Position numbers and translations under genes: made by a program. Below are positions 2,317-52,262 of a stretch of 64,000 nucleotides of DNA, one piece after another. Numbering within the stretch: the stretch's first letter is position 1; every line of letters starts with the position of its first letter. The notes under the pieces were generated by a model, which saw nothing but the letters and a program-made list of their open reading frames with translations, was not told the origin of the DNA and ran no database searches. The stretch comes from Phaeosaccion multiseriatum (lineage: Eukaryota; Protista; Ochrophyta, other classes): assembly GCA_965112735.1 (NCBI GenBank), contig OZ218951.1:1116001-1180000 (forward strand), read 5' to 3'.

Positions 2317-5300
2317 CTACTCCTTCTCATACGCGCCCCCCAGCTTGCCCTGTGTGTTGTCATACGTTGGTGTGACGGTGGACAGATTGGAGGACATTCC
2401 GCTCCTCACACTCCCTGTGTCGTCATCCCTCATGTTGAGGTAGTTTCGAGACTGACTCTGCGTCAACTGCCCCAAATCCAACCCACTCACCACACCCACC
2501 ACACCCGCCCCGCCCGCGCCCGCACCAGACCCATCGCCATCTACTGCCATCTTAGCTCCCATGGCCCTCGCTCGCAAAAGACGCCCATCAGCCGAGAACC
2601 TTGCCTGAAGATCACCAGCCTCGTCCTCCGATTCCTGCGCGTCTTCCTCCTCCTCGTCCTCGCTCAGGGCTACAATGTCCATCTCACTTTCCTCCACATC
2701 TGAGACCCTTCTCTTGGATGCCTCCTGAATCGCTCCTCCTCCTTCTGCTGCAGCTGCCGTAGTATTGCCTGGCTTGTGCTGAGCCTGGCTGAGTAGTGGC
2801 AGCCCACGGAAAGGGGTTGCGGGGTCTCCTGCTCCTCCTCCCCGCCCCCCTGTCGAGGTCAACATCCTACCCTGATACAGCAAACCCTTGTCTGTTCCTA
2901 CTTCTCCTCCAGTCACTGCCGCCCTCCCTCCACCTCCTCCGCTCTCCTTCCCTTCAGCTCCGCCGGCGACGGCATCTTCAGCTGCCGCCGGTGCTGTGCC
3001 GCCCACCCCCGGTATCGACGCCCTTCGACTGCTCCCCTTCTTGAGCAAGTTCCCCAGGCCGCCCAACACCCCCACCCCTCTCCCACTCTTCACACCGCTT
3101 GACACTCCTCCTCCTCCTCCTCCTCCTCCTACTTCTTCTTTCCCCTCCTGTGGAGCCCCGCCAGAAACGCCAGGCGGCACCAGCAACTCTCGGCGACTCC
3201 CGAGGAGGCCTGACAATTTGCCACCCCCACCCCCTCCTCCAGCTCCACCCCTGCCTCCCTCTCCTCCTCCTGCCGTCTCCTTGCTCTTGGTCCCCTCAAC
3301 CCAATTCTCCTCCTCGGCCTCAGTATCATCATCGTCCGCATCATCATCATCACCATCATCAGCCCCATCGTCGTCAACTGTTGAGGCCGGAACCCCAGCA
3401 TTGGGGGGAGTGCGCAGATCAGACAGGAAGCGCCCCATCATCACGTCTCCTCCTCCTCCTCCTGCTGTATCACCAACTGGTAATCCTAGGGCGGAGTCCC
3501 CATCTGTGATACTCTCGTCGTTGTCCTCCTCCTCCTCCTCCTCCCCCGCCTTTCCTTCCCCGGGCGACGCCACGGACGCCCCCTCTTCCACCTTCGTTCG
3601 GCTGTGCACCCAAGCTCCCGCCATACTCTTGGCTCCGATACTTGCCACATCTGCCCCTCCCCCCTGCTGGGAGGGCCCTGACGTCGTGGACGACGGTGGC
3701 AATAGCACTGCTTCCACTGGTGGCAGTGCTGCATCGTCTCCACCTCCTCCCCCGTTCTCCGGGCCTTCCTCCACCCCTGGAGGCCGGCCCACGCCTCCCC
3801 CTCCCCCCGCTCCTTCTCCTCCTCCTCCTCCTCCTCCTTCTCCGCTTCCTCGCCCCTTCTCGCCAACGTCATTACCCTCGCCAACGTCCTTACCCTCGCC
3901 CCCGCCCTCCTCCTTGCCGAAGGGCCAAAGCCCCCTGGCCGAAACCCACCCCGCCCCATGCCAAGAGTCGGACAGGGGCGAGGACGACGAGCGGCAGCCA
4001 TCCCGAGTGGGAGAGAGAGATGTAGATCTGCTCAGTGGTCCAGAGGTGCTCGGGGGGAGTTCGCGGCGCGGGTTCGTCGTCGGTGCCGCACCAGCAGCAG
4101 CAGCAGCCGCAGCAGCAGCAGCAGCCGCAGTCGCAGTCGCCGCAGCAGTAGCTGCAGCAGTTGGTGATGCAACAGCTGCCGTGCTAGCATCGGCGGTGGG
4201 CGGCACAACAGCAGGAGAAGCAGGTGGTGACACCGCAGCGGGAGCAGGAGCAGCAGCAGCGGCGGCAGTAGTAGCAGCAGGAGCGGCGGCGGTAGCGGCA
4301 GTGGCCGCAGCAGCGGCGGCGGCGGCAGTAGCGGCAGTAGCAGCGACAGCAGTAGCAGCGGCTGCAGAAGCAGCATTTGCTTCAGCGACAGAAGCAGCGA
4401 GGTTCTGCATGGCAATGGTCCTTCCCCGCCCTTCTCGTCCTTCTTCATCTTCAGCAGACCGGCGCCTCTCCTCCTTCTCCTCCGTCTCTGCTGCGTGCTC
4501 CAGAGAGTCCAGAGAGGGTAGGTTGTTCCGACTGCCCATCCTCCTTCCTGATCCTGCTCCTCCTGCTCCTCCTTCTCCCTCCTCTTCAGCCACAAGTCGC
4601 AAACTCTCGTCGTCTCCCTCTCCATTGCCGTGCTCCAGTAGAGTGGGCGTCCCCGTGCTCCTTGCTACTGGCTCCCCTCCCCCACGCCCCAGCACAGTCG
4701 GTGCGAGCGTTTCCACCGTGGAACAAATCGACTCGGCCGCCCCGCCCCTCCCCTCCCCTGTGGTGGTGATCGGCGGTCCGCTCTTGTCATCCCCGGGGGG
4801 CGCAGCGGAGGTGACGACAGCGGTGGTGGGGAGAACATCCCTAGCAGAGGCAAGGTTCTGTGCCGCCAGAGACGCGAGAGAGACAACCTCCTCCTCCCCT
4901 TGTCGCTCTCCGCCTCCTTGGCTTGCTGCGGCCCTGTTTTGCGACCCCTCCGCGGAAGCAGCAGCAGCGGAAGGGACGCTCTCGACCCCACTCGACGAAT
5001 TCCTGTCTCGGTGAGAAGAAGGGTCGCTTGAGGAATTCCTGTCTCGGTGAGAAGAAGGGTCGCTTGAGGAATTCCTGTCTCGGTGAGAAGGGTAGCTCGC
5101 CCCGTCGCCTCCCCCTGAGACAGCCGACTCGGGGTACCCTTCCGCTTCCGCTGCCGAAGAGTCTGAGAACGGGCCGTGTGCGGCTCCGAGGAAGCCTGTG
5201 GGTGAGACGTTGGTTGGGATACAGAGGGGGGAGGGGAGAGTGAGGAAGGGGAGGGGGTGAGGGAGGGAGGTTCATGAGAAACAGCATCTAATGAATCAAT

Positions 5301-6550
5301 GTGTAAGATAAGCGATCCTCACGTAAACACACACAGGCTCTCTCTCTCTTACAAATACAAGTACATGACACACACACACTCACTCACTCACTCACTCACC
5401 TGTTGCGATGCTCTTTCGGAGGAGGTGGCAATTCTTCTTGAACAGAATGGGCCAAAACGAAACCCAAACCTCGCCCACTCGGCGCTCCACGAACCGCCGT
5501 AGCTCGGGGTCCTTCGGGTAGTCACCATTTGCGGCCTGCTGCTCGTCTTGCAGCTGCCGTACCACCAACTGATCCTCCTCCGAGTCTTCCAGATGCCACT
5601 CCTCTCGGTACGATGTACCTTCCGCGAGCTGTCGGTGCTGGCTCCGGTTGCTGGCGCTCAGCTGGGGAGGAGAGAAGGGGTCTTTGTTCGCACCCCCCCC
5701 CATGCTGTTACCCTGTCCGCCTCCATAGTCAAACGCCACCCTCTCCGTGGAGCAGCACCCGGTGCACGACGAGCAACACGAGCAGGTCAAGCACGCCGAC
5801 ATGGAGCAGTTGGTGATACAGCAGCCCGCCTTGGACCACCACTTGCCCCGTCGGATGAAGTAGGACGTGGACAGGAGCGCATCCAGGAATATGGGAAAGG
5901 CCAGACAAATGGCGACGAGCACCTCGATGAGCATGATGGCCAGGAAGGCATCCTCCCTGAACCCTTTTCGCTCTCGGTCTCCGTCGTTGTTCCTGTCGCC
6001 CAGGATGACCACAGAGAGGAGCAGCCCCACCACGGCGAGGTTGCCCAGAGCGGCCAGGCCTGTGTATGAGATTTGCAGTTGCATGCATTCATTAATAGGG
6101 GTTGGTCAGTTGGTTGTGTGTGTGTGTTTTGTCGCATTGATGGTTCTTGAAAATGTTTGACTACGGACAACAGAAAGGCAACAAACAGACAAACAACCTT
6201 TGGGCGTCTTTCTTTTCTCCCTCAGCTCCCTCTCCTCCGCGTACGTGAAATACTTCTCATTAAAGCACCAACTCCCTTCCCTTCCCTCCCTCCCTCCCTC
6301 CCTCCCTCCCTCCCTCCTCACTCACCTGCCCCGCAGTTGAGGGCCCTGTTGCAGAAAGGTGTGGACCTCACGAGTAGGCCGAAGTTGAGCAGCGCCACCC
6401 CTCCGAACACGCACAGCTGAGCGATGCCGTTGTCCACCAGGCCTAACAAGAAGGATGGCCAACAGCCGGTGCGTGTGTGTGTGCGTGGGCGTGTGCGTGA
6501 GGGAGGGGAGCGAGTAAGAGAATGAGGCTGGTGAATGAGAGTGGTTCACC

Positions 6551-6584
<34 letters not shown>

Positions 6585-9500
6585 GCAAAAAAACAAGAAA
6601 AAAACCGTTTTCAACCAATCACGCAAAACTCACCCGCAACCGCCGCCAACACCAGCATGGAGACCAAGCCGACACCCGCGTACACATAGCCCGTCGACGT
6701 GTAGTCCACGTAAAGCGGCTCCCCACCGATGCGCATGAGCTCCTGGGTACGTTGTTCCGTGGTGAGGCGGTTCTGCATGAGGTCGTTGAACGTTCGCTGC
6801 TGCTCCTTCATTGACGAAGTTGCCCGCTCGGTATCCGTGTGGTGGATGCTGCTGGGCGTGGTGTTTGTCGGGGAAGGCCCTCCCTCCAGCTCAGCCTCGT
6901 CATCATCATCGTCAAAATGGAAACTGCGATGCCCCCCCCCTCCTCCTCCTCCCTTCTCTCCTCCCGGGCGCTCTGCCAGCCCCCCTACAAAAGTTGACTC
7001 GTCGTCGTCGCCATCTGTCTGTGAATGTTGAGCTACAGAGGCGATGGTGTCTTCGTCTTCCAGTGCCCGAGCCGCCTCCCTCTCCCTTGCTTCGGCGTCC
7101 AGCATGTCGTCGAACAGAGCTTGCCGGGCCGCCATGCTCCTCTCGACTGTACCGCACATACATACGTTTACATACGTTTACATACGTATACATGCACACA
7201 TGAGAGGGGATGTGAGAGGCATGTTAGAGGTATAGAGGAACACGCACGCAAATACACACACCATGCGGGTTTCAGTTTAGTAGACCTTAAGCTAGACTCA
7301 ACAGAAGCCATCGGATGGACGGCAACTTACAGATGAAGGTGGCTTGCCAATTGCCCTTGTCGAAGCAGCTCAGGAAGCGCCCCTCTCCGTTGTGCGTGTC
7401 CAAGATTGACTGGCGACTGTGCAGAGAGAGAAGGAGAGGGTCAGAACGGGGGAGAGAGGGATACGCATGCGCATTTTACAGAGAGATGGCAAGGAAAGGA
7501 TCCGGGGCAGAGAAGACAAGAGAAGAGAGAGAGTGAGACGACGGCTTCCTCTTGGCCAACCAAGCAGCTAACAACAGACTGTATAAATTGAAGAAAAAAC
7601 ACACCAAAAAAACATCCAAAGGCAAACAGAAGTCCCTTCCTCTCACCCTCTCATCATTCACTCACATCTTCCCACCGACGCCTTGGGCCCTGGCTCCTCC
7701 GCGCCTGCCTGGGGGCTGCAGCTGACCAAAGCCAACGTGGCTCCGGCTGCTGCCACCGCTACCACCACTGCTGCTGCAGCTGTCGAGGAAGCTGCTCCTG
7801 GCCTTCTCCTCCGGCATGCCATCCGTCGGCCACCCTCCTCTTCCTCGCATGTTGTTGTGCACGTCGTCGCCACCTGTGTCTTGCTCCTCTTCCTCGTCCA
7901 TGGCGTACTCAATGTAGGCAATGGGGCTGTCCTCGCGGTTGAGAAACCTTGAAAAGAGGGTGAGCATAAAGACGATGAAGGGAAGGGCCACGAGCAGAAG
8001 GAGGGAAGCCCCTGCCGCCACAGCGTAGGGGCAATCCGTGCGCAGGCTGCGGAACTCTGCAGTGACCATGCCTGCGGTTGAGGGAAGAAAAGATTTGGTT
8101 GGGGTCAGGGTTGGGTAAAAGGTTAAAAGGGTTCAAGGTAAGGGTTGGGGTTCGGTTCAGCTCCTCGATGAAAAATATCCATCCATCCCCAATATCGACC
8201 TAAAGCTAAAGCCGATGGGTGTCAGGATCGGAGGTGTAAGGTTTTGAGGTACATATGGGATTACGTAAGGGTTTGAGTTGGTAGGGTGAAGGTCAGGTGT
8301 GACCACACACAAACCTGTGAAGAGGAAGAGCATGAAGAAGAGCTCGAGGTGGGGGTAGTACATCCAGCAGCTCGACTTGGACGCCTGGAACAGGTACGCG
8401 CTGCAGAAGGGGGGGGGAGGAAGGAGGAAGGAGGAAGGAGGAAGACCGAGGTTGGGGTGAAGTATGAGATGCGAACGGCAACGAAGACAACGAAGAAAGA
8501 GAGACTGATGAATTGAATGAATTGACCGGCTCTTTGAATGACTGACTGCCCTTCCTTCCTTCCTCGCTTCCTTCCTTCCTTCCTTCCTTCCTCTCAACTC
8601 ACCACAAGGGGCTGCGCAGTTCCCTCTCCAGTGTCTTGACCTCCCTCTTGGACAGCGGGGCCTCGGGCCCGGCAAGGGGGTCCCGCCTGCGCACACTCAC
8701 CACACCTCCCTCCACCCCAACCAAGCCGCTGTGGCTGCTGTGCCCTTGGCTGTGGCCTTGGCTGTGGCTGTGTCCACTCAGTTGAGGCGGTACGCTGCTG
8801 CTGTGGCCAGAGCTGCTGCCGTACACGCTTGAGGAGCCTGTGCCAGGGTGCTCGAGGACGATGCGGCGGAGAGCTTCCACGGGGCGCTCCTGTGAGTGTG
8901 ATGGATAGATTACCAACACGCGAAGGAGGAGGAGTGAGTTTTATATTTAAAGATGATGTCCAAGAGGCAATACATGCGTGTGTTGTGTGTGTTGTGTGTG
9001 TTGTGTGGGTGTGGGTGTGTGTGTGTGTGGCCGTGCTTACCTCCTCACTCCGGAGCTTGAGCAGCGAGGCCAGCTCGTCGTATTTCTGAGGGGAGGATGG
9101 AAGAACGAAAGGAAGAAAGGAAGTTGTTGAGAGGCAGGACAGGAGATCGCCAAGAATGCTTCCCCCTCCCCCTCTTTTCTTCTGCATGCCAGCCTGGTGT
9201 GTGTGTATGTGCAGCGACCAAACGAAACGAACCTCTCGAGTCGTCAGATGCTGCTGCAGCGACGACGGCACCAACGACACTTGAGACCTCGACGACACCG
9301 ACACGACAGACCGGTCCTCCTCTTTGGTTCCGATGCCTCCTTGCTGCCCCTCTTGCTGCTGCCGTATCACCAACTGTTGCGGCTGCTGCGGCAGTCGCTG
9401 CCCGCTCTGGCTGCTTGTGTTGTCTTTGTCGTCCTTCTCAACTCCGAGGGCCTCGAGCACTGCTCCGCGCCGTGCGAGCCAGCGAGCCTCCAGTGCTGCA

Positions 9501-10373
9501 GTGTTTGGGGTGTGTTGTTGGGTGTCAGGAGTCGGAATTTCTCTCTTTTTTTTATCTCTTTTCTCTCTCTCTCTCATCTCCCTCCCCTCCTTCTCTCTCT
9601 AGGGCTTACTCACCGGAGGCGATGGTGAGGTGAAGCAGCACAACAAGAAGAAGCGCTCCGAGCACAAGCACTGAGTTGCCCACGAGAAGCGCCACATTGC
9701 TGCTCCCACACCCCTCCTCGAAGCTCCCATCGGGACCTCCTAGGCGCCGCCCTTCACCACTCCGACTATCCCACTCGACGCCATCGCCCTGGTGATCCGA
9801 GAAGTGTGAGTAGGGCGAGTAGAGGATGCGATCGTTGTTGTTGTTGTTGTTGTTGTCGACAACGCTGCGCTTGGTGGTGTAGTCGGTCCTTCCGAAGGGA
9901 AGCAGCTCATAGGCCCACCACCAGACATTCACCCACGTGATCTCATCTGCAGGTACATGGATGAGCAGGCGTATGGGCACGGAGACCGGGCGAGATGACG
10001 GGAGGTTAACACTTGCACTCTACACCCACAACAAAACCTTCCTCCTCCTCCCCCTCCTCCTCCTCCTCCTCCTCACCAGTGAATGCACAAAAGTCTCTGG
10101 AGTGATCCTTCGTGGCCACAAAGAAGAGCAATGCCACGGCCTGAGCCTGCCCCAGCAGCAGCACTGCGAGAGAGGTGGAGGGGGCTCGAGCTCGGGCGTT
10201 GAAGAGGGATCCCGGCGTCTTGTGAACGAAGGAGAGGATGGCGGCCGCCAGCACTGCAAAGGCCACCACGGCGGAGTACATCTGAAACGTTTGTTTTCGT
10301 TTGTTTGTTTATTTGGAGAGGGAGGGGAGGGGAGAAGGGGGAAGGAGGGAGGGAGGTTACGCCGCGGACGTAT

Positions 10374-10407
<34 letters not shown>

Positions 10408-14478: not shown

Positions 14479-15888
14479 ATGCTTCATCTGCGGCGGGGGG
14501 GGCGTGGTATCGACCTCAACCTCCTGCGGCACAGTCGCCTTAGGCGGAGGAGGCCACGACCAGCAGCTACTATCTCATGTTTGAGGAGGCAGTTGACCCA
14601 CCTTCAAGTGGGGCAAGCGGAGGGGGAAGGGGGGCAGGCGGGGGGGCAACAACAAGAGGGGCAGGAGCAGCAGCGGCGTCAGTACCACTACCGGCAGCAA
14701 CGGCAAGAGGAGGAGGAGCGGCGACAATGGGAACGGACGTATGCAATGATGGGTGCGGGGGGCATGTTCTTTGCGGCGGCTGGGCTGTGCGTACTCGACG
14801 CGGCGGAGGGCAAGAAGGAGAGTGAAGGGGGGGTACGGGGCGGGAGAAGAGGAGCAGATTGGAGAGGGAGGGGAAGGGGGTGGGGAGACGGCGGCTGCGT
14901 GCAGTGCGAAGGGAACAGTGCTGTTCGTATGTTCCAACTTGGCGATCGAGGGCAGGGAGGAGTGCAGGCCCAAAAGCACCACAGCATTAAGGATAATTAC
15001 GACATTGGCAAGCCCCTGGGGGAAGGCGCCTACGGCATGGTGTACGAGGCAAGGGCGGTGCACTCGGGGGAGCGCGTGGCGGTGAAGAAGATTAGCAAGA
15101 GCCAGCTGGGGGAGGAGGGCTTTTTACGAGAGCTCAACACGCTCAAACGCATCCACAGAGAGGGGGGTCATCCGAACATTGCGGGGGTGAAGGACTATCA
15201 CGAGGATAACAAGTTCTTCTACGTCATCATGGAGCTGGTGTCCGGGGGGGAGATGTTCGAGCACCTGTGTCAGAATGGGCCTTACTCGGAGGCCAAGGCG
15301 GCGGGCTTCTTGCGGGAGTTGGGGAGGGCCCTCACCTTCTTGCACGGACAGGTGAGAGGGAAGAGAGAGAGGTAGAGGAAGAGGAAGAGGGGAGGGGAGG
15401 GGGGGGGGGGGGGGGGAGGGAGGGAGGGAGGGAGGGGGGCGGAGGGAGGGAGGGAGGGGGGGCAAGGGACGGAGATGACGACATGGATTAACGTCTCTTC
15501 CTCTTCCTCTCCCTCTCTGCAAACCAAATCCAACGTCACTTCCACCGTTCTTGCACGCACACACGCACGGGCACACACTCCTCCTCCTCCTCCTCCTCCT
15601 CCTCTTCCCACCTCCTTCCCTTCCCTGCCTGCCTACCTACCTCCTCCAGAACATTGTCCACGCTGATCTCAAGCCCGAGAACATCATGCTGAGCTCCTGG
15701 GACCTTGACAACTCGTGCCTCAAGGTCAGTTCCAGTGTCACTTCCCCTTCAACACCCACCACCAAGAGGGGATGGATGGGTGGATGGCAGTGGATGGATG
15801 GAGGGCGATGGGTGCATGGATAGATGGATGGAATGCCAATCAAAAGCTGAGACAGACATGTAACCCCCCAACAACCCAACCATGTCAT

Positions 15889-15923
<35 letters not shown>

Positions 15924-19860: not shown

Positions 19861-21120
19861 AGGGGCACTACAGCGTGTTGCAATATGCTCTGTACATACA
19901 TAGAGGAGCGAACTGAACTCACTCACTCACTCACTCACTCACTCACTCACTCACTTGGCTGGGCCAGTTGGGACTGGTGAATGAGCTCTGTAGGTGGGGG
20001 GACCCAAGCACTCGGAGGAGCACAGAAAGAGAGAGAGGGGGGGAGAGAGGAAGCGAAGGAGAGAGTACGGAGGACAAAGGGATTGGGATGGACTGATTTG
20101 GAAATATGTCGGTCGGTTGGTAGGTTGGTCGGTTGGTCGGTCGGTGGGTGAGGGAAGGAAGGAGAAGGAGGAAGGCGGGCGGCACTGCACGTGAGCGCCT
20201 TGTCCATCGATCCATCGGTTGTGCCATGCAGTGCCATACAGTGCCATATTGTGTTGTGGAGGGACTCCGAGTCGGGAAGGAGGCCTGTGCCTGACTCGGG
20301 CTGTCATCGATGGCAGCACACACGCCGAGCAGGGCAGAGAGGAAAAGGGCGTGGTGAGGTCGAAGTCGCCTTCAATTCGATCCCCGTCGACATGAGCCGA
20401 GGCGGGGGTGAAGTATTAATTTTGCCGTGTGAAAAGAAAAAAAGAAATGATGTAAACTGTATTGTAGTGGGGAAGGGGGGGGGGGGGGGTGTACAAAGAA
20501 GCTTTACACGAATGCATACATCAAGTCAATTTCGCTTGCTCCGTGAGGGGCGGCTCGCCATTTGCTGCCATCGAGGGGCCCGGGCGTGTAGTCACCACGG
20601 GTTGCCCCCTCTCAGTGCTTCAGCCACCAAGCCTCTCCTCCCTCCCTCCCTCCCTCCCTCCCTCCTCCCCTCCTCTCCTCTCCTTGGGCCTGCTCTCCGC
20701 ACGGCTCCTTCGCAGTTTAGACCACCGCCTTGCAAGGAGTGACTTTTTACTCTTACCAATCTACATACTTTATTCTGATTCTTTCTCATTCCTTCTCTAT
20801 TGTTACTGTACCTGTTGTATTCGACTCTCCTCCCCTCTCGACACGCTCCCCTCCAGCGCGTGTCGCAAGTGGTAACATGAATCCCCTCAACAAGAGCCCA
20901 GGAGCGCCCCCCTCCCCCCCTTCTCCCGGCCTCTTCCTCTTCCAACTTGTTGGCGTCTGCCGTCCATCCAAGAGCGTCCACCCACTGCAATCCATCCACT
21001 GCCATCCACCCACCCATCCATCCACTGCCATCCATCCATCCATCCATTGGATTTTTTCCACTGCTGTCCATCTAAGACCCTAGGACAGAGAGAGCTTTTT
21101 AACCCCATTGTCCTCCCTCT

Positions 21121-21683: not shown

Positions 21684-21729
<46 letters not shown>

Positions 21730-24257
21730 GGGGCGATACAAACTTTCTGAGATTATGGTTGCGTTAGTTCCACGAACAGTCCAAGAACGATACACACCCA
21801 ACCGCTTTGCTTTGCCAGCAATGCGTAATGTATCGGGTATTCTCTTCTCTCTACATGCGTATGTGTGTGTGTGCGTGTGTGTAAGTCGGTTGGTAGGTTC
21901 GGGAGGGAGTGGATAGGTACGTAGGTGGGTGTACGTAGGTAGGTGGGTAGGTAGGTAGGTGGGTTGGCCGGTAGGTAGGTGGGTGGGTAGGTCGGTAGGT
22001 ACGTAGGTAGGTACATGTAGGTAAGTAGGTTGGTTTGCGTGCACATGCGATGCCCAACTTCTCACCTTTGAGGACGTAGTGCTTCTTCTCCTGGGACTCT
22101 TCCTCCCTCCTCACCCACAAGTCCTCAAGCTGGGCGTCGAGGACTTGTGCCCCATCGTCTTCGACTTCTCCTTCGCCATACTTCTTCCACTGCTTCTTCA
22201 CATGTTCCTTTGTGATGCTCAAAACGCCGTCCTGGGGGCTGTACTGCCTGAGAATACAGGAAACGTGGCGTGAAGAGGAAAGGAGAGGAGGAGGAGGAGG
22301 AGGAGGAGGAGGAGGAGGAGGAGTGAGAGGGGAGGAGGGAAAGCGAGAGCGAGAACGAAGGGGGACAGAAGCAGCACGCACACACACATACACAAGCACG
22401 CACACCCATGTACTTACTTGATGCCCTTTTCCGACCCGGCGAAGCTGACAACATCACCAAGGGTTTCGTCCGTCACGAGGATGACTTTTTGTTTTTGGCC
22501 GAAGCCGCCTCTCGGGGGATTCTTCCTCACAAAGAAGCCCGTGTGCCTGACAAACAAGAAACGAAATGGAGAATTGGTTGGTCGGGGGTTTCGAGAAGGA
22601 GGGAGGGAGGGCTTCGATGTATGGTTTCAATTTCATAAGGTCACATAAACTGAAAACTGAAAACTGAGCAAGTCGTTCGCCCCCCTCTCCCCCTCTCCCC
22701 CTCTCTCTACACCCTTCCCCTCACCTCTATCATTCGCCCCCCTCTCCCCCCCCTCTCCCCCGTCTCTCTCTACACCCTACTTACTTGAGGAGTTTCTTGA
22801 GGGTGTTCCCCTTCCGCACGTCCACGTACTTCCTTGCGTGCTCTACCGCTCTCTCATACACCGATCGCGCGGTTTCAAAGGGGACTCGCGAGTCGCACCG
22901 CAGCTGTAGGGCATATGGGCAGGCAAGGAAGGCAAGGAGGCGGTGTGGCCAGGCAAGGCAAGGCCAGGGTGGGGTGGGAACGAAGCAGGAGTAGGAGAGG
23001 AGCAGCGCCATCAGCACCAGCACCAGAGCACCAGCACCAGCAAGAGAGTAAGGGTGTCAGTGAGCGAGTTTTCCGTCATCAAAGTATTCAGAAGTGCCTC
23101 CCATCGGTCCGAGTCAAAGGGAGGGGGGAAGGGTGAAGGCCTTCGGTAGTGGACAGCAAGTAGTGCTAGTTTCCTCCCTCCCTCCCTCACTTTCTCCCCT
23201 TTCTCCCCCTTCCCTCTCTCTCTACCTCTCCCCTCCCTCCATCCCTCCCCCCCCCCCCTCCCTGCCTACCTCGTCAAGACTGACGTCCACCATCCCGTTG
23301 TACCCATTCACGTAGATCGGCTTGCCATGGGGCAGTGGAACGGGCTGCAAGTAGGTACCCGCAGCCTAAAACAATCACAGGACCACAGGGAGGGAGGGCG
23401 TGACGAGCAAGTGACTTGTGTAAGCGCGAACATCAGCAACAGAGCGATTGGGCATTCACTATCAGCTCTTCTCAGCTCTCCCTCTCCCCCCCCGCCCGAT
23501 TCGGTCGTATCCTTTGCCCCTGTTCTTCTTCTTTCCCCCTTCATCTCCTCTCCTCTCCTCTCCGCTCCCCTCTCCGCCTCTATAGTCTACCTGTCGGAGC
23601 ATCCTCACGCCCACATCCACGCCTCCTTCGCGTTGAGCCATCTGTTTGAACTGATCGAATACGTCACTAAACCACCCGAACACCGCCTTCTGCCGAGCCA
23701 CAGACAGGCACAACAGCCTGTTCAGGAAAGGCCCCTGTGAGGTGTGATGGAGGTGTGGTGAGGTGGGTGTTAAAAGTGGAGGCCGCAGGAGGGCGTTGAT
23801 ACAGCAACAGCAGCAGCAGTCAGTAATAAATCGGCAGCAGAAGCAGTAACAAAGCAGCAGAAGCAGTAGCAACAGCAGATGGTGATACAACAGGAGCAGC
23901 AAAGGGTTTCCGAATGCTCCAATGGTGAATGTCCATGATGTTGGGCTTTTGATGGTTTCAAATCACTCACTCACCACTTGCCCCATGCGGTGGCCCATCC
24001 TTTTCTTGTCCATGAACATCATGTCAGTGAGGTATAGGCTGCAGCACTCTTTGAAGTCTACGGGCTTCTCATCCTGGAGGGGGAGGTGGAGGGGAAGGGG
24101 GGAGGGATGGACACAGGTGGGCAAGGGGTTTGGGTGGGTGGGCGGGTCAGGACCGAAAAAGGGACGGCCTCCGAGAGAGATGGAAAGAGAGAGGGAGAGA
24201 GAGAGGGAGAGAGAGAGAGGGAGAGAGAGGAGAAGAGGAGAGAGAGAGAGACAGAGA

Positions 24258-33345: not shown

Positions 33346-33548
33346 CTACTCCACCACAGCATCCTCTCCCCCTCCCTGAGGCCCCTGAGGCCCCTGAGGC
33401 CCCTTCCCATCGCCCTGCTTCTGCTGCGCTACAGCCAAGGCCGCTGCCTGCTCGTGGTCGAGGAGACGCAGTACCCAGTCCTCCGCCGCTCGCACGCCCG
33501 GCTTCTTCACCACGAGCAATCTCTTGTCCTTGTCGTACACAAACGACA

Positions 33549-33580
<32 letters not shown>

Positions 33581-34880
33581 TCCAGGCCGCTCCTCTCCAG
33601 CACCACCGCCTCCGGGACGCTCTCCACCCCGACCACCACCACCCTCTCCACGGGGTTGGCAAAGACCTCCTCGCTACTGCCAGGCGTATCACCAACTCCT
33701 CCAGCTGCAGCAGCACTGCCATTGTCAATGCTATTACCCGCCCCACCTGCGGTGCTGCAGCTGAGCGCTCCGTCCTCGAAGCGCAAGAGGCGGAGGCTGG
33801 ACTGTCCCTTGAGCCTGTAGTCGAAGCTCTCTTCATCGTCCATGTAGAGCCGGCCCTCGGCCGTGCCCGCTGATGAGAGCGCTACCACGAGCGTGTAAGG
33901 GTCCTTGCTCATCAGTTTCGAGCTGCGCCTCAGCCTCCCCTTGGTGGGGATGACGGTACCGCCTCGCTGCAACACGGGCAGAGGAGCGTCGATGGCAGCC
34001 GACAGCTCTATCCGCCGGCCACCCTTCTCATCCCCTCCTGCGAAGCGCTCATGCGTGTGCATGTGGTACCAAACATCAGGGGAGGAGGGCGATGACGACG
34101 GAAGGTAGAGGTCGAGGCTGTCCTGCCCCTGAGCAGTTACCGGCTTGACCAGGAGAGCGCTGCCCACCATCCACTGGTCGTCCATGTCGAACGTGGTGGG
34201 GTCGTCGGGAAACTCCATCCACATGGGCCTCATCATCGGGACTCCTGACGTGGAGGCCTGCGAGTAGAGGGTGGTAGTGGTGGTGGTGGTGGTGGTGGTG
34301 GTGGTGGTGATGAGGGGGACATGTGGGAGGGAGGGATCGGGAGGGAAGAGAAGGGAGAGGGAGGGTGGGTATGAGGGGGACAGAAAAGGATTCGAAAAGC
34401 GCACGACAAACAAACGGACCGAAGCCTTCATAAGAAAGAATACAAAAATGCCCCCTTACTCCCTGTGAACTTCACCTTAACCTTACTTAATGATACTTAA
34501 CCCTTGCCGCCCACGGATGTAAAACTGATCGTCCGCTTCCATCTCGCCTTATACACACACAGGTGATTCTTTCGGTTGATTCCCATAAGTCAATAGAATC
34601 CCCCCCCCACCACATCTTACACGCAACTCACCTCTTGAAAGAGCGTGTACCAGTAGGGAAGGAGGACGTAGCGCTGCACAACGGCCTCTCTGATTCGAGC
34701 TGTCCAAGGCTCTCCGAACACCCAGGGCTCCCTCCGCTTACTGTCCAAGTGGGCGTGTGATCGGAAGAAGGGCTGAAGAGCTCCGGCCTGGGTGGTGGTG
34801 GGAGGGGGGGGGGGTAGATGGAGTAGTAGTGGTAGGAGTAGTAATATAGTACAACGAAGTAGTATAGTTAAAGGAGGAGA

Positions 34881-34957
<77 letters not shown>

Positions 34958-37900
34958 CAGTAGTAGTAGTAGTAGTAGCAGTAGTAGGAGGAGTAGGGTT
35001 TCCGAGTGTAGGAGAAGAGGCGGAGACGAGGGGGAGGAGGAGGTCGTGAAGTTGCTGTACGGGCCGTCCCATGATGAGGAAAAGAGAGAGGGCGTGTGGA
35101 CAGACTACAGACACGAAAACAAACCATGCTTCTTTCTCTACTCATCCATCCACCCGGACCCAACCCAATTCAGTCAGTGTGTCCCTGCCGCTTGATTGAC
35201 TGACTGAGTGATTGATTGATTGACTCATTCATTCATTGACTGAGTGGGATTCATTGACTGATGTGTGCACCTCTTGTCGTACCTGCATCCATCTCAAGAA
35301 GAGCTCCGCGTCAGGGTTGCCGAAGAAGCCTCCCACATCGGCCCCTACAAAGGGCAGCCCGGCGATGCCCTATAATAGCAAAGAGGGGAGGGAGGGAGGG
35401 AGGGAGAACACAAAAAGTACGGCAGAAGGGAGGTAGTGAGGGAGTGATACACAGAGACACGCTCTGTCTGTACTTTTACGTCCGAGGCATATGAGCAGGT
35501 GGATGGGTGGGTGGGTGGGTGGGTGGGTGGGTGGTAGGGCGTATTTCCGGCGCCACTCCATCACTCCGCCGCATTCTTCGGAACGGGCAGGGCACCGTCT
35601 CCTCCACGCCAGCCTTGCACGTGAGCACGCACAGCTTACTCCGGCGCACGCACCCTCCTCTCGCCGGGGCCCTTACCGCTGCCCCCCCCCTCAAAGCTTA
35701 CGTACGTACGTACGTACGTACGTACCATGGACATGAGCATCTTGCCCGAGGCCTCAAGGTGTGCCCAGTCCGCCGTGTTGTCTCCCGTCCATATGGCGCC
35801 CCACCGCTGGCTGCCCGCCCAGAAAGACCGGCTCAGCACGAACGACCTGCGCAAGTGATGCGGGCGGGCGGGCGGGCGGACGGACGGACGGACAGAGAGC
35901 AGGGCAGCAGTTGGTGATACAGCAGCGGCGATGGCATGGCAGTGCCGTAGAAAGAGAGAGCAATACAAATATATATACAGTGAGAGAGGGTGGGGGGAGG
36001 GGAGAGAGAGAGGGAGAGAGAGAGTCAGTCGTAGTAAAGTGTCAGGCGGAAGTCAACTCGAGGGCTTCGGGAGAGGGAGTTTCAGCTTCAGTTTCAATTT
36101 CAGTTTCAGCTTCACGACAGACAGAGCAGTCGGGATGTCTCTGGAATGCCTCAGGTGTTCCTCTCTCTCCCCTCCCCTTCCTCCCTCCCTCCCTCCCTTC
36201 CTCCCTCACCTCCCTCCCTCCCCTCCCTCCCTCTCTCCCTCCCTCCCTCCGTCCCTCCCTCCCTCCCCCCACCAACTCACTGCCTCACCTGGCGTTTTGG
36301 TCGGGGTGTCGCTGCACGAGGCCCTCTGACGTGGCTCTCTGCATGTACATGCCATAGAGGTTGTGCCACTCACTGAGGGTTGGCGACGACGACGAGGGGC
36401 AACAACAGATGGCGAGCAATGAAGAATTGCATGAGGAACATTGGATGATGGTGCCAGAGGGAAGCAATCAACGCAGGGGGGAGTGGGTCTGTCGAGGAGG
36501 AGGAGGAGGAGGAGGAGGAGGAGGAGGAGGAGGAGGAGGAGGAGGAAGAGGACTTACCGATGCTCAACGCCTTGGATACTGAGGCAGTCCTTCTTCATGG
36601 ACACCTCTGGACCGTTAAACACGCTCGGCTCGTTCATGTCGTTCCATACGTGCAGGTTAAGAGTGCTTCCTTTGTAGTTGGACAGGGAGAAGCGGTCCTG
36701 CGGGGGGGAGGGGGGTAGGAAGGGAGGGAGGGCAGAGGGAGATGGAGGGGGGGGGTAGAGAGGAGGAGAGAGTGAGAGACAGAGAGAGAGGGCGGGAGAC
36801 AGAGACAAAGGGAATGCGGCATCTTATCATATAGGAATGAAGTGGGCAGCGCCGCTACTGACACTCCCATGACCTGCACGCACGCACTCACCGCCCACCA
36901 CTGCCGCACTGTGCTGTCTGTGAAGTCCAAGTAGGACGACGAGCCGGGCCAGCACCAGCCGTCTGAGCATCCCGGGATGGCAGTGGATGGGGAAGAGGGG
37001 AGAGGGGAGGGGAGAGAGAGGAGAGAGGAGAGGAGAGAGGGGAGGGGGGGATCGAGGGGAGGGGGGAGAGAGGAGAGGGGTGAGAGGAGAGAGGGGAGGA
37101 GAGGATCGAGGGTAGGGGGGAGGGGAAAGTTAAGGGGCTTGCGAGGTCTCCAACGTGCCAAACCAAATGTAAAACATTTGACCCAAGCGGGACCAAAAGG
37201 GAACCAATTGGTGCGAAACCACTCACCAAAGTCGTTTCCGTCCTTGTCCTTAATGTAGAGACCCTTCTTTGTGGCCTCCTTGTGAAGGTCCCAGCGTGAG
37301 TCCCTCTTGATGTGGGGGTCTACAATGGTCACCATCTTGCGGCCGTGGGCGGCGATGCGGTCCTGCATGGCCTCGGGCTCAGAGAATTTGTCCTTGTCCC
37401 TGGTGGGTTTAAGGAGGGAGGAGGGAGAAGGGGGGAGGGGAGGGAGGGGAGGGAGGGAGGAGGAGGGAGGAGGGAGGAGGGAGGAGGGAGGAGGGAGGAG
37501 AGAGGAGGGGGGAGGGGAGGGAGGGAGGGAGGAGGAGGGAGGAGGGAGGAGAGAGGAGGGGGGAGGGGAGGGAGGGAGGGAGGAGGAGGGAGGAGGGAGG
37601 AGGGAGGAGGAGGGAGAGAGGGAGGGAGGCAAAGCCAGCAAAAGAAAAGGGGCAAGAGTTTGGAGAGAGGGCGAGGGAGGAAGAGGGAGAGGGAGAGGGA
37701 GAGGGAGAGGGAGAGGGAGAGGGAGAGGGAGAGGGAGAGGGAGAGGGACCGCGGCAGGGAGAGGGATAGGCAAGAAGGGTCAGCAGCCACGACACAGGTG
37801 GGAAGCTTGACTTGGTGCTGCGTTCCCTTCGGCTGAGTAGGTGGCGACTGCTTGCTTCCTTCCCAGTCAAACTTGCCCCCTTGTCCGTCGTTCCCACGTC

Positions 37901-40900
37901 CCCATGTGAATCTCTGTCCCTCACCCTCTCCTCACTCACCCACTCACCCACTCACTTACTCCTTTCTCATCCACTCACTCACTCACTCACTCACCCACTC
38001 ACCCACTTACTTACTCCTTACTCACACACCCACTTACTCACTCACTCACCCACTCACCCACTCCGTTACTCCCTAACTCACCCACTTTTCTCACTCACTC
38101 TCACTCCTTCCTCATTCCTTCACTCACTCACTCACTCACTCACTCACTCATTCCTTTACTCACTCACTCACTCACTCCTTTACTCACTCAGTCACTCACT
38201 CCCTGACTCACTCACGTGTACACACACGTACACACACACTCATCCCTCCCTCCCTCACTCACTCACTCACCATGAAAAGTACCTCTTCCCGTCAGTGTGC
38301 TCAATGTCGAGCCAAATGACGTCATAAGGCATATCTAAATCCTCGAAGCCCTGATCCACCGTCCTCACATCCTCCATGTCTTTGTAGTTCCATCGGCACT
38401 GGTGATAGCCCAGAGAGAAGAGGGGCGGAAGCTCGGGCCGGCCGGTGAGGCGTGTGTATTGGTCGAGCACCTGAGGCCCCGGGGGGGGGGATAGGGTAGG
38501 ATGGACATGATGGACATGGAGGAGGAGGGGGAGAGGGGAGGATGGAGATAGAAATAGAGAAGGGGGAGAGGGTATGATGGAGATGGAGGAGGAGGAGGAG
38601 GAGGAGGAGGAGGAGGAGGAGGAGGAGGAGGAGGAGGAGGAGGAGGAGGAGGATTGGATGGAGATGGATGAGGAAGGGCAGGAGGGGGAGAGGGTAGGAT
38701 GGAGGTAGAAGTAGAGGAGGGGGAGGAGGGGGAGAGAGTAGGAGGATAGAAAGGAGTAGGAGGTGGTGGTGGGTCGAGGAGCAGAGGCAGCGGGCAATTG
38801 GTTTGTGTACGAGGACACAACTCTGTGTCGTGGGGTCTTGAAAACTTCCTTCAGTTTCGCCTGGAGAGGCAATTCTTACGCCTGCTCGATATCGATACAA
38901 CTGAAACTGCGGACATGGAGGACACACCTTCTTTGGGGAGGGCCCCGGGATGAGCATGAGGTCGATCACGCCACTTTCGCTCATCCAAAACACGGTCGAG
39001 CCTGCTCCTGCTGCTGTATCACCAACTGCCGCCCCGTCGCCGTCCGGTTGGCTCTCCTGTGACACGTCCACAAAGGTCTCGCTGGGGTTGTTCCAGAACA
39101 CGCTGACAAGAGACAGAGAGAGGGTTGGGATGGCAGTAGGTGGGGGAGAGGAGGAGAAGGAGGAGCAGGGGGAGGAGGAGGAGGAGGAGGAGGAGGAGGA
39201 GAAGGAGGAGGAGGAGGAAGAAGAAGGAGAGAGGGGGTGAGTGGGAGGAGACCAGCATATCGTCATAGGAGAAGGTAGGGGCTACCTGACTGGCTGACTG
39301 ACTGACTGACTAACCGACCGACTGACTTCCCTCCTTTCTTCTGTCCTTTCTTTCCTCCCTCCCCCCCTCCCTCCCTCCCTCCCTCCCATTTTTTCTTTCT
39401 TCCTCACCCCGTGGTCTGCCCCAGCTTGTGGCTGAGGACGAGGGGGATGTTTCCATAGAGTGCCATCGGCGAGTCGAGAATGTACTCAAACACGTCGAGA
39501 GTGTACAAGCGGTACGGTTCGGAGTAGCGCGCTCCGGGGCCTGGGGTGAGGGCGGAAGGGTATATATATAGGTATATGGGTATGGGCATATGGGCATGGG
39601 TGAATGGTTACAGGAGCACCTCAACAAAACCTGAAACTGAATCTGAAACCGGACCCATCCCCCTCCCTCCTTCACACACACACAAATTACGTAACTCTTA
39701 GGTTGATTCCCATAAGTCAACACAACACATTCACCCCCTCCCCCCATTGACCTCCTGACCCCTTACCCGTGGTGGATGGCAGAGCCAGGCTCGTGGAGTG
39801 CTCGGGTAGTCCGTACGTGTGCTTGGCGTCGGGGAAATGCACGTCCACACCGACAGACATGGGCCCCCGGGGCTTGCTGTCGGGATGACCGCCGAAACTC
39901 TCCTCCCACAGACCCAGGCTCTTGTCCGGGTCATCGTCTGTTAAGTATGTGTTGTTGGTGTGTTGGTGTGGCGTTCATCATATTTTTGTTGTTGTCATTC
40001 CCTGTGTCATTTGCTCCCTCCCCCCCTGCCTTCCTCCCCTCCCCTCTCTCACCTTCCGACACCCCCCCCGAAGAAGAAGAGCTTCCATCCGCCGCTGCTT
40101 CCGCTTGGACCTGCTGCGCTTGCTGCCCTTTCGCAACCTCCTCCACCTGTCGCTTCCATGTTTCGTGGTCCTCCTTACTCTGTCTGCTGCCATCCGCATA
40201 GATTGCCAGCCCATCCTCTCCGTAATCCACCACTTCCTTTCCCTGGTGTTGATCCGGCACCTCGTACGCTTGCCCCTGTCCTTCCCCAGCGGCCTGCCCC
40301 TGCGATGCCCCTGCTTCCTTGGCCTTGCGGAAGCCTTCGCCCCTCTCCCTCTGCTGTTCAAAGTACAGTGAGCCCTTTGTGTTTGCCGATACAGCCTCTT
40401 CGCCGTTGACGTATAGCTGAGGGGAGAGAGAGGGGGGAGGAGGGGAGAGAGAGGGGGTGAGAGGCGAGAGAGAGAGGGTGAGGGGGAGGGCGACAGGGGA
40501 GGGAGGGAGGGGAAAGGGAAGGGTTGGAGAAAGAGAGCGGGGATGGAGACAGGGGAATTATTTACGCGGAGAGGAAGCGACGCTGCTGTCTGCTCTCCGA
40601 TTGAGAGAGAGAGGGAGAGACACAAAATATAGGGGGCGAGAGGGAGAGGGGGAGAGAGAGAGAGCTAGGGAGTAGAAGATTGAGGAGCCCTGCACCCCGA
40701 AAGCCTCTCGCCTGAGGCCAGACGGAGCGACAATACGGTTGCTGGTCTCCCGCGGGGGGCGGGCGGGGAGCACACGCATACACACGCGCGCACACATGCA
40801 CATAACACACACACGCAACAGCAGCTTCATACGTAGCCTTACGTGTGCCGCGAAGGGGTTGAATGTCACGCTGATGAGCAGACCCTCTCCGTACTTAATG

Positions 40901-48756: not shown

Positions 48757-51553
48757 TTACCTGCTCGGCACGACAGCACTCCCCGCCGCTCGCCTTCCCT
48801 CCGACAACACCCCTGCGCCCTCGTTATCACCACCATCGTCGTGATCACGACCACCAGCAGCAGCAGCCGGAGGAGCCCAAGAAGCTGCTGTGGCGCTGCT
48901 ATTAGCGCTGCTGCCGCTGCTGCTCATGCTCGTGACTCCATTGCCCTCCTGTTCCTCCCCCCCCTCCCCGCCCCCATCTCCGTCCACAACCTGCAGCACC
49001 CCCCCCCCTCCTTTGCTCCCGTCCTTCCCTTCCCTCTCCTCCCCACCCCCCCCCAGCAACCGCACCGCCTTGAGGACAGAGTTGGCCTTGAGGAGCATCT
49101 CCTCGTACTCAGAGGTCACATCGGACATTGCCGTCACCGCCCCCCCCGCCCCCACAGTCACCCGTCCATCGGGCTGGGCCACTGCTGTGCGGATAACAAT
49201 GTTGAGCTCGCTGGAGCCGTCCACGCCCATAAAACCGAGGCTGCCGCTGTACACCCCCCGGGGTTGGCCTGAGGGGATGAGGAGCGGGGCGGGGCGGGGG
49301 CGTGAGTCGAAAGTTCCAAGGGGAAAAGAAACACGCCGGCAGCTCCTCCTCCTCCTCCTCCTCCTCCTCCTCCTCCTCCTCCTCCTCCTCCTCCTCCTCC
49401 TCCTCCCTCCTCCTCAGCCCCATTCCCCCTCCCCCTCTCTCTCCGTCTGCCTCCCTCTCTCCCTCACCCTCTCTCCCTCCCTCTCTCCCTCTCCCCCTCT
49501 CCCTCTCCCCCCCTCCCTCCCCCCCGCTCAATCCACTCTCTCCTCTCACTCACCTTCCTCCAAGTGGTCGATTATCTCCAACGTACGCCGCTTCGGAGAC
49601 CCCGTCATGGAGCCCCCCGGGAAAGACGCCGCCAACACATCCACCACATCTACTCCGGGCAACAACTGGCCCTCTATCTTGGATACCAACTGGTGCACAT
49701 TGGCGTAGCTCTCTACATGCATCAGGTCTGGCACACGTACAGACCCCACTTCGCAGACCCTTCCCAGATCGTTTCGTACCAGGTCCACAATCATAAGGTT
49801 CTCTGCGATGACCTGTGGAGGATAGGATATGGGGTATGTAGAGTATAAGGCACAGGGGATGGGGTGTAGGGTATAAAGTGTCAAGGACACAGGGTATAGG
49901 GTATGGAGGGAAAGCGCACAGAGGCAACAGGGTAAATAGTAAAGGAATGAAAGTGTTAGGTATGGAGGATAAGGTACACCCAGACTAACCTTCTCGGAGG
50001 TGAGCAGCTCGTCCGCGAGGGCGGCGTCTTGCTCTGGAGTGGCCCCCCGGGGGTTGGTGCCCTTAATGGGCTTCGACTCCGCCAGGCCTGCTCGGTTGAT
50101 GCGAAGGAACTTCTCTGGGCTGCTGCAGCAGAGGGCGAAGGAAGGACCCCCTCCCTCCTCTCCTTGCCCCTCTCCCTGTCCTTCCTTGGCCTCTCTACCG
50201 ACGAGCGCCCTTCCGCCTCCGGTAGTAGTCCCTGCTGTATCACCAACTGCTGTATCCTGCTGTTGGTAGGGAGTGAAGCGGCGCTGAGGATCATGCTTGA
50301 TGAAGGCAGCGTACGGAGCAGGGTTGCTTCTTCGCAGCAGCAAGTACAGGTCCAACGGAGCCTTGTCCCGAGGCAGGCCCTGCTCGGTTTCCAATTGATT
50401 GGTCAGGCAGACTTCATACGTTTCCCCCCTGCCGATGAGGTCAATGCACTCTCGAAGGTTGTCCTCATACGTCTTTCGGGACCGATTTGAACGACACACG
50501 GCGAGAGGCCGAGGTCGAAGCCGTGGTGTCTGCTGCTCCTTTTGTTCCGCCTTCTTCCCCTGCTCCTCCTCCTCCTTCATCCCCCCGGCTTCAGAAACAG
50601 TTTGCTGTCCCTGTGATGCCGCGAGCAAGGAGATTCTCGAGGCCGTCTCCTCAATCCAAGCCCTCGCCTCTCCCTCCTCCTCCTCCTCCTCCTCCTCCTC
50701 CTCCCTCTGCTGCTGCTCCTCCTGTTGTTGATTCTCGTCCTTCTTGGTGCCACCATCCCGCACTAAAGCCACAGCATAGGCTCGCTGCGTCTCATGGTCG
50801 TATGCAACGAATCGATTGGCAAAGACCCAAAAAGCCGTCGGCACATCAGGTCTCCCTGTCTGTGCTGCTGCAGCCCCTGCTTGTGCCCCTTCTCCTAACT
50901 CTCCCTCTCCACCATCCACTGCTTGGAGCTCCTCATGTTGCCATGTCCATGCCTGCCCGCCGGTGTGGGAGAGCACCGCTGCCGTTTCGTGTCTAAGCTC
51001 GTAGCCAAAGTAGCCCACGTATCCCCCAACAAAGGGGAAAGGAAGTTCCTCACGTTCTTCCTCCGCCTCCTCCTCCTCCTCGCTTGCTGTTGTATCCCCA
51101 ACTTCTGCAGCTGATGTTGCACCCTTTTGGCCAATCCTTCGGGCAGTGACACCACCGACCCTGTTGCCCCGCGCTCCACCGCCGCCTTTCGAGATGATCC
51201 TGCCCTCACTGCTGCCGCTACCCCCGTTACCATTCCAGCCTTCAATCTGTCGTTTCAGAAAGTCAAGGAGACGGCCTCTCAGCACTTCCTTCCTTCCCGT
51301 GTCGGCATCAGTGGTCACCACCTCACCCACACCCGCCTCCTTGTCTTGAAGGTAGTACTCTGTATGGATGGGGGTGGTGGTGGTGGGGAGGGGGGGCGCG
51401 ACCACAAACAACGGCAAGGGGGTGAGGGGTGAAAAAGAAAGGCGAGGAGGAGGTTGGAGAGAAGAGGAAGGAGCAGGGGAAACGAGGAGAAGGACGAGGG
51501 GAAGGAGTGGAAGTAGTAAATAGTGGTAGTGGAAGTAGTAAAGAGTGGTAGTG

Positions 51554-51641
<88 letters not shown>

Positions 51642-52262
51642 CAGTAGCAGTAGAAGTGGTAGCAGCAGGAGGAGGAGGAGGAGGAAGAGGAGGAGGGATG
51701 TACAGAGGCAGGGCATATCGCATGGAGGGGAAGAGGACGAGCAGCTCATGTCTCCAAACGCGACAAAGAGGGGGAAACTCGCGCTCCTTCACCCTCTCTT
51801 ATACACTCAACGTACCTACTGTACTCGCTCCCCTTCCCTCCACTCCTCCCATGTAGCTGAATCTCGCCTTGGCAAAGCCCTTTTTGCGATCCTCCAGCTG
51901 TGGCTGTAGCGAGCTGCTGTCCAGCCACCAAGCTGTCTCTCTGTGCCCGAAGAGGGAGAGAAAGATTTGCTCTGACGTTGCCAGGGGCGGCGCAAGGGGA
52001 AGAGAAGGGCCGCTACCGGCGCCCTTGTTGCTGCTACTGCTTCGCTGCAGATCAATCTCCTTGAAAAGAGCTACGAAGCCGGGTTGCTGCTCCTTCTCGT
52101 ACTTACTTGCTAACCCCTCGGGTTCCTGCACCCGCACCTCCTCCTGTATCACCAACTGCTGCTGCTGCTGCTCATGCTTTTCTGGCCTGTTTAGCCCCGT
52201 CCAGATATTTACATTCGAAATACCCTCCACACCCCCCTCCGCGAGACTAACTTTACTTGTCC

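Follow-up and report, generated by a model that had tools for sequence, protein, structure and literature searches.

A short word of 12 nucleotides (nt), AGTTGGTGATAC, recurs in unrelated genes along a 64-kb stretch of the genome of the ochrophyte Phaeosaccion multiseriatum (contig OZ218951.1, positions 1,116,001 to 1,180,000; below, the window, to which all positions refer). The word was found to lie in CAG-class triplet tracts, in one orientation and phase relative to the repeat and in several reading frames when exonic. We consider it quite possible, and adopt as a tentative explanation, that the word is the unique core of a lineage-specific dispersed repeat, about 20 nt long, that templated repair of breaks copies from one CAG tract to another and that persists only where the frame is free of stops and the region structurally neutral. 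All counts were made in this one window and on both of its strands. Copies are named by their first position.

A search with AGTTGGTGATAC allowing up to one mismatch detected 12 sites, eight exact and four with a single mismatch, and so recovered every coordinate and strand listed in an initial annotation of the same DNA, which had been made from the sequence alone. Dinucleotide shuffling gave an expectation of 0.11 matches at this threshold, and none of 100 shuffles reached 12. For exact copies, Markov models (order 0 to 5; copies included in or left out of the training) predicted 0.002-0.02 against the eight observed. The initial annotation had held that eight exact copies are extreme even for a word picked post hoc, and the simulations agree: the commonest complex 12-mer in simulated windows reached only three to four copies, so that the choice of the word after the fact does not explain its excess. 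Chance and composition were therefore rejected as the cause, on the combined evidence of the shuffles, the Markov models and the simulated maximum counts. Nor is the word of low complexity, as had also been stated; once simple repeats were filtered out, AGTTGGTGATAC and its overlapping neighbours topped the k-mer lists at every k from 9 to 14. Other over-represented 9-mers (TTGAGGAGC, GAGCACCTC and CGTGGTGAG) were considered as comparable units, lacked common flanks and were set aside as ordinary.

Aligned on the strand of the word, all 12 copies lie in or at a CAG-class tract with the arrangement ...GCAGC-AGTTGGTGATAC-AGCAG..., which in the phase of the repeat becomes (CAG)n-TTG-GTG-ATA-(CAG)n, that is, three non-repeat triplets inside the tract. 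On the strand of the word, (AGC)n in a single phase and orientation gave the best fit to the flanks of 11 of the 12 copies. When flanks were scored as repeat against random positions of the window, every copy reached at least the 95th percentile and nine reached at least the 99th. The position profile showed about 22 conserved nt, with a nearly invariant 12-nt core and flanks that grade into imperfect triplets; mismatches numbered 4 in 144 core positions against 22 in 120 flank positions, the core being significantly better conserved. Pairwise comparison of 812-nt segments around the copies confined the similarity to 18-25 nt, fading into repeat on both sides. The longest match, between copies 5559 and 9364, spanned 35 nt at 89% (5537-5571 and 9342-9376, - strand) and extended 3' of the word (GGCAGC.GCAAGA...). 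The 5' boundary was the same in all 12 copies; none was longer than 35 nt and none was cut within the core. A 15-mer search at up to three mismatches added one candidate only, at 4221, against 1.3 expected by chance.

Pure CAG-class tracts of at least 9 nt number 49 in the window, and roughly a fifth of them carry the word; under a looser definition there are about 102 CAG tract loci, some ten of them with a copy. AGTTGGTGATAC is the sole recurrent complex sequence adjoining CAG-class tracts in the window. TTG-GTG-ATA differs from CAG-CAG-CAG at seven of nine positions and is the same at eight unlinked loci, which makes an independent origin at each locus impossible. A compound or interrupted microsatellite that arose in place was rejected on this ground, although the word does lie within a tandem array, as such an origin would lead one to expect. 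Directly 5' of copy 50237, at 50249-50262 on the - strand, we noted a partial tandem duplicate in which GGATACAGCAG is followed by TTGGTGATACAGCAG, giving the peptide DTAVGDTA; it shows local slippage acting on the unit.

Host genes were examined with Pfam, which confirmed SBNO (25.6-31.0 kb), ADCS (49.5-53.4 kb) and a GH31 glucosidase, the GANAB of the initial annotation (exons at 33.3-34.4 and 36.6-37.8 kb), all on the - strand; the membrane protein named there corresponds to the open reading frame (ORF) 5395-6105(-), which has two transmembrane-like segments. The frames of the copies were read from the longest open frames. Ten copies fall in long open frames; for the other two, 23877 and 35909, no frame is convincingly open, and an intronic position is probable. 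Judged by the longest open frames and the Pfam genes, none of the 12 copies of the window lies in promoter or intergenic DNA. Copies 3467, 33686, 39016, 50237 and 51092 are read as VGDT and copies 5559, 9364 and 52146 as QLV(I/V), and the antisense readings are ASPT at 4159 and CITN at 5808; the frame containing TGA is at no copy the long open one. These four frames, the avoidance of the TGA frame and the lack of promoter or intergenic copies all agree with what had been reported, and the word is not confined to a single frame. Eight of the ten exonic copies are in sense orientation.

The ADCS gene was informative in this respect. In a BLASTP alignment with Pinguiococcus ADCS, copies 51092 and 50237 stand opposite alignment gaps and copy 52146 lies in the linker after the GATase domain, and the conserved blocks that flank the copies stay in frame only when the word is retained. 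From these alignments, the ADCS copies appear to be translated and not spliced, in two frames (VGDT twice, QLVI once), within lineage-specific inserts or linkers. Exon 5395-6105 contains one sense copy (5559) and one antisense copy (5808). The use of two frames in ADCS, together with both orientations in a single exon, indicates that the cause lies in the DNA and not in the protein or the mRNA, and the earlier proposal of a frame-independent signal at the nucleotide level is upheld on the same two observations. The low-complexity DNA of 2320-5271 has open frames on both strands along about 2 kb, of 984 aa (-) and 712 aa (+), and Pfam matched neither. The coding strand is thus ambiguous at 2.3-5.3 kb; this affects the sense or antisense call of two copies and leaves the conclusion unaffected.

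The flanks also bear signs of common descent. AAC takes the place of AGC after the word in copies 4159, 23877 and 51092, that is, in three of the four copies with a core mismatch and in none of the eight exact ones (Fisher p=0.018, in a small sample of 12 copies), and copies 5559 and 9364 have a longer GGCAGC... flank in common. The linkage of flank variants to core mismatches points to a family that copied itself and then diverged, rather than to independent selection at each locus, and the sequences as aligned fit such a descent. The initial annotation had left two readings side by side. Copying or insertion is the one favoured by the orientation lock, the fixed phase and the flank variants tied to core mismatches. 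A site for a chromatin, insulator or methylation factor is not supported, given the lack of promoter and intergenic copies, the locking of orientation and phase to the CAG tract and the location of copies in lineage-specific low-complexity inserts. We attribute the lack of promoter copies to where the CAG tracts occur.

CAG tracts are prone to breakage and stall replication forks. In the explanation that we tentatively favour, a break or stalled fork in one CAG tract would be repaired from another tract that already bears the core. The triplets on either side would supply the homology or microhomology, and the 9-12 nt core would be copied with its orientation and phase fixed. Copy-and-paste of this kind among the many CAG-class tracts of the genome would multiply a unit that encodes no protein and would need no function. 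Selection would act as a filter, such that exonic copies would persist only in the five stop-free frames and only in tolerant low-complexity inserts or linkers. The core would seem the better conserved part in that unique sequence changes by substitution only, and the flanks by slippage and by variable end-points of copying. Templated repair was chosen because it is the simplest process that requires no extra machinery; from the pattern of copies we infer both this mechanism and the neutrality of the insertions.

Several points weigh against templated repair between tracts. The homology available is very short, the tracts being mostly 5-24 nt, and this is well below what efficient ectopic recombination usually needs. 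In three copies (3467, 33686 and 50237), one flank or both hardly resemble repeat. The copies are not more clustered than the CAG tracts themselves (P about 0.1), which gives no specific support to local template switching; a purely local form of it was rejected for this reason. The near-absence of decayed copies could mean purifying selection on the word, and the excess of mismatches in the flanks over the core would also be predicted by a selected site. This contrast is nonetheless expected without selection too, because microsatellite flanks mutate faster and the end-points of copying vary. Finally, the evidence comes from a single 64-kb window.

It is possible, if somewhat unlikely, that the unit propagates itself without any protein as a 'selfish interruption', being a mobile element of about 20 nt that spreads into CAG microsatellites throughout the genome, including exonic ones, possibly by biased gene conversion or RNA-templated repair, or else that a factor which marks or stabilises CAG tracts recognises it as its site. 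If either were true, it would be a eukaryotic counterpart of the over-represented oligomers of prokaryotes.

We think it unlikely that the copies are minimal 3'-terminal stubs of a LINE/SINE retroelement with CAG microsatellites as its specific target. Its target-primed reverse transcription, if begun at one set position of the repeat, would lock orientation and phase, both of which are indeed fixed relative to the tract, and microhomology of an internal CAG stretch with the target would lead to a uniform and extreme 5' truncation. The subfamily structure is also typical of a replicating family, and non-LTR (long terminal repeat) elements that target microsatellites are documented (PMC4640811). 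However, one 5' boundary is common to 12 of 12 copies, none of which reaches further into unique sequence or is truncated in the core, and a Pfam scan of 29 long ORFs or open spans, which took in 26 of the 33 ORFs listed at 220 aa or more, found no reverse transcriptase, endonuclease or transposase domain. The hallmarks of non-LTR elements and SINEs, a shared 3' end, 5' truncation of variable extent and the presence of longer copies, were not seen, the 5' boundary being uniform and the length at most 35 nt. A miniature inverted-repeat transposable element or other DNA transposon with terminal inverted repeats was likewise rejected, the inverted pairs 3467/4159 and 5559/5808 having unrelated interiors and only 18-25 nt in common. 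A target-site duplication would be masked here by flanks that are themselves triplet repeats. The initial annotation had raised identity with part of a known transposable element as a possible refutation; there was no element body, no terminal inverted repeat, and no reverse transcriptase or transposase among the scanned ORFs of the window.

About equally doubtful is a DNA signal under selection, in which the word would be bound by an abundant sequence-specific protein, such as one of the Myb or zinc-finger type, with a role in gene bodies, chromatin, replication or recombination, or the stability of CAG tracts. A core far better conserved than its immediate flanks, a sharp edge of the family with almost no degenerate copies, and a 12-mer that stays intact in three copies despite a flank that is not repeat-like are all as such a site would predict. 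On the reverse strand, CAACTG/ACCAAC has what we take to be a likeness to Myb-type core sites, and TTGGTG presumably resembles Chi-like or minisatellite cores; we do not treat either resemblance as evidence. A protein-bound site, however, would not be expected to keep to one orientation and one phase with respect to a CAG tract; promoter and intergenic DNA account for none of the 12 copies, and the copies occupy the least constrained parts of their proteins. The correlation of flank variants with core mismatches, moreover, speaks for shared descent and not for independent selection. The enrichment in regulatory or intergenic DNA that marks a transcription-factor or insulator site was not seen, ten copies being in long open frames and two in probable introns.

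A role at the RNA level, as the target of a small RNA of about 22 nt, a splicing signal or a tiny GT...AG intron, is very improbable. The conserved unit does measure about 22 nt, most exonic copies are sense, and GTTGGTGATACAG starts with GT and ends with AG; yet antisense copies occur in exons as well as introns, the continuity of the ADCS frame requires the word, which is hence not spliced out, and the non-coding copies showed neither a precursor-like hairpin (z -1.2 to +1.6) nor an Rfam match. The sense bias follows from a preference of CAG tracts for frames that give Ala or Gln over those that give Leu or Cys, as in the Eimeria tracts described in the pertinent passages of PMC4199364. Several more specific RNA or structural identities were rejected: a known RNA family or a tRNA-derived origin (no Rfam match, no tRNA), a miRNA-like precursor at the non-coding copies (none found by folding), a small-RNA gene or target (no significant fold, no Rfam match, copies both sense and antisense to their genes), a slipped-strand hairpin with the word in its loop (z -1.7 to +1.8, no common structure), and a spliceosomal mini-intron or introner, the ADCS blocks around 50237 and 51092 being in frame only with the word and the GT...AG span being 13 nt, not a multiple of 3. 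Least probable of all is an artefact, be it a remnant of an adapter or primer or a mistake of assembly or polishing in CAG repeats, which a short and exact word might suggest, but which is contradicted by copies on both strands and interior to a contiguous 64-kb sequence, by long ORFs that stay open, by four different one-mismatch variants, by the flank subfamilies and, as an indirect check for adapters, by literature matches of the word only in unrelated primers.

Relatives and public collections were then compared. The best named matches of the ADCS GATase domain and of PDX2 came from Phaeothamnion, Pinguiococcus, Tribonema, Ectocarpus and Chrysoparadoxa, all ochrophyte algae, at 52-63% protein identity, which places the window in a stramenopile alga close to the PX clade and without a near relative in the collections. 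In about 100 kb from six relatives of the PX clade (L025-L030), including the syntenic ADCS-PDX2 loci, we found no copy in CAG context and no analogous private word. An extended 19-mer, present four times in the window, had seven matches among prokaryotic genomes totalling 596 Gb and 17 in a metagenome collection, and a 16-mer gave 74 singletons in viral contigs; all of these outside matches were singletons in unrelated contexts, at chance level. Searches of the literature met the word solely within unrelated primers and turned up no described analogue. As far as these sequences represent its relatives, the unit appears to be restricted to this lineage.

We also compared the unit with known systems. 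HIP1, the uptake sequences of Neisseria and Haemophilus, and Chi are prokaryotic, have a known or proposed recognition machinery and are not tied to microsatellites; HIP1 is a palindrome. The word resembles these signals in being short, exact, hundreds- to thousands-fold over-represented, genic, and read in several frames with the stop frame avoided. It differs from them in being confined to CAG tracts, with orientation and phase locked, eukaryotic and non-palindromic, and the 19-mer is at chance level in the prokaryotic genomes searched. The analogy with HIP1 and uptake sequences drawn in the initial annotation consequently holds for the statistics and fails otherwise, the word being no palindrome and the genome being that of a eukaryote. 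The opa (M) repeats of Drosophila are a dispersed, transcribed family of the CAG/CAA type common to unrelated genes, and they are degenerate. The unit is like opa in placing dispersed CAG/CAA-type repeats in unrelated genes and unlike it in having a unique conserved core. The interruptions known from disease-type repeats (CAA or CAT in CAG, AGG in CGG) are single triplets, one substitution away from the repeat, that arise in place. These, too, are non-repeat triplets in phase inside a CAG tract; here, in contrast, three consecutive triplets, at seven of nine positions different from CAG, are identical at eight unlinked loci.

The closest parallel for the carrier tracts was found in Eimeria, in whose genomes coding CAG repeats and homopolymeric amino acid repeats (HAARs) are scattered through unrelated genes, according to the passages on these repeats in Reid et al. 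(2014; PMC4199364). In those passages, translation of the Eimeria tracts yields Ala or Gln for the most part and seldom Leu or Cys; the tracts occupy structurally neutral stretches away from conserved domains, and any action that they may have is placed at the DNA level. The carrier tracts in the window are of the same kind as the HAARs so described, being coding, read as Ala or Gln over Leu or Cys, and outside domains. Eimeria is an apicomplexan, however, and the passages of PMC4199364 on CAG, HAARs and telomere-like repeats describe plain repeats, whereas here a unique core of 9-12 nt is held in fixed phase. With microsatellite-targeting non-LTR retrotransposons (PMC4640811) and microsatellite-associated mini-elements (PMC3812793), the unit has in common that it is dispersed, associated with one type of microsatellite and fixed in orientation. 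The retroelements have bodies; the copies in the window, in contrast, have 18-25 nt in common, with no variable 5' truncation and no reverse transcriptase or endonuclease among the scanned ORFs.

Table 1. Copies of AGTTGGTGATAC and of a second dispersed word, ATGGCAGTGGATGG, in the window
Class	Position	Strand	Context
AGTTGGTGATAC, exact	3467..3478	-	Right flank AGCAGGAGG..., left flank not repeat-like; long open frame 2320-5271 on the - strand reads VGDT, + strand open too
AGTTGGTGATAC, one mismatch, AGTTGGTGATGC	4159..4170	+	Within long GCA-type array 4088-4375; AAC flank; ASPT on the - frame, VGDA on the + frame
Possible 13th, older copy or local duplicate, two mismatches, AGGTGGTGACAC	4222..4233	+	63 nt from copy 4159, in a common array; reads GGDT
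AGTTGGTGATAC, one mismatch, AGTTGGTGGTAC	5559..5570	-	Sense in ORF 5395-6105(-), QLVV
AGTTGGTGATAC, exact	5808..5819	+	Antisense in ORF 5395-6105(-); CITN in a Cys-rich stretch that is the antisense of a GCA tract
AGTTGGTGATAC, exact	9364..9375	-	Sense in ORF 8597-9598(-); QLVI, poly-Q context; GGC flank subfamily
AGTTGGTGATAC, one mismatch, AGATGGTGATAC	23877..23888	+	CAG/CAA-type array of 20-nt period; no long open frame; probably intron or other non-coding DNA near SBNO; AAC subfamily
AGTTGGTGATAC, exact	33686..33697	-	Sense in GH31 C-terminal exon, ORF 33346-34431(-), VGDT; past the last Pfam domain; least repeat-like flanks of all
AGTTGGTGATAC, exact, full 22-nt consensus GCAGCAGTTGGTGATACAGCAG	35909..35920	+	Between GH31 exons; probably intronic, antisense to the gene
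AGTTGGTGATAC, exact	39016..39027	-	Sense in ORF 38325-39281(-), VGDT
AGTTGGTGATAC, exact	50237..50248	-	ADCS, VGDT; in an insert that Pinguiococcus ADCS lacks
AGTTGGTGATAC, one mismatch, AGTTGGGGATAC	51092..51103	-	ADCS, VGDT; insert without counterpart in the ortholog; AAC subfamily
AGTTGGTGATAC, exact	52146..52157	-	ADCS, QLVI after a Gln run; linker between GATase domain and next conserved block; left flank of eight perfect triplets
ATGGCAGTGGATGG, exact	1315-1328	-	
ATGGCAGTGGATGG, exact	15784-15797	+	
ATGGCAGTGGATGG, exact	20992-21005	-	
ATGGCAGTGGATGG, exact	21018-21031	-	
ATGGCAGTGGATGG, exact	36977-36990	+	
ATGGCAGTGGATGG, one mismatch	2537	-	
ATGGCAGTGGATGG, one mismatch	21482	-	

The second word, ATGGCAGTGGATGG, was present in five exact copies and two with one mismatch, against an expectation of 0.00. 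Part of these copies are embedded in (ATGG)n/(GGAT)n microsatellites, and the rest have unrelated flanks. This may be a like phenomenon in another class of microsatellite, and it suggests a general process acting on microsatellites here. The simple-repeat load of the window is extreme: Tandem Repeats Finder returned 166 rows, dominated by the period-4 repeats (AGGG)n, (GTGA)n and (CCCA)n and by purine-rich triplets, with 87 AGG-class against 49 AGC-class tracts. Young tandem arrays of complex units were also seen, at 30984-31119 upstream of SBNO (29 nt x4.7, 94%), at 4997-5090 (36 nt x2.6, 100% identical) and at 33088-33243 (78 nt x2, 96%). Pfam further supported genes for a cNMP-binding protein, a kinase, a deaminase, a thioredoxin and PDX2/SNO. 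The last of these and ADCS are direct head-to-head neighbours (49546-55027) and also adjoin in Phaeothamnion and Discosporangium (L026 982-5073; L030 10001-18125); by this comparison, the ADCS-PDX2 pair is conserved across PX-clade algae.

The unit is a dispersed short repeat tied to a microsatellite, and it belongs to none of the known families with which it was compared. Extrapolated from the density seen here, one copy per 5 kb, the number of copies in a genome of about 100 Mb would be of the order of 10^4. Should the pattern extend genome-wide, this would be the shortest dispersed repeat family in a eukaryote known to us, and it would mean that unique sequence can spread by way of microsatellites into coding exons without the hallmarks of a transposon. 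In practical terms, the word could serve as a lineage-diagnostic marker and as a natural tag for the turnover of CAG tracts. More broadly, the finding bears on the origin and diversification of low-complexity protein inserts, on the exchange of sequence among dispersed microsatellites, and on whether eukaryotes possess word-level genome signals like HIP1 or uptake sequences.

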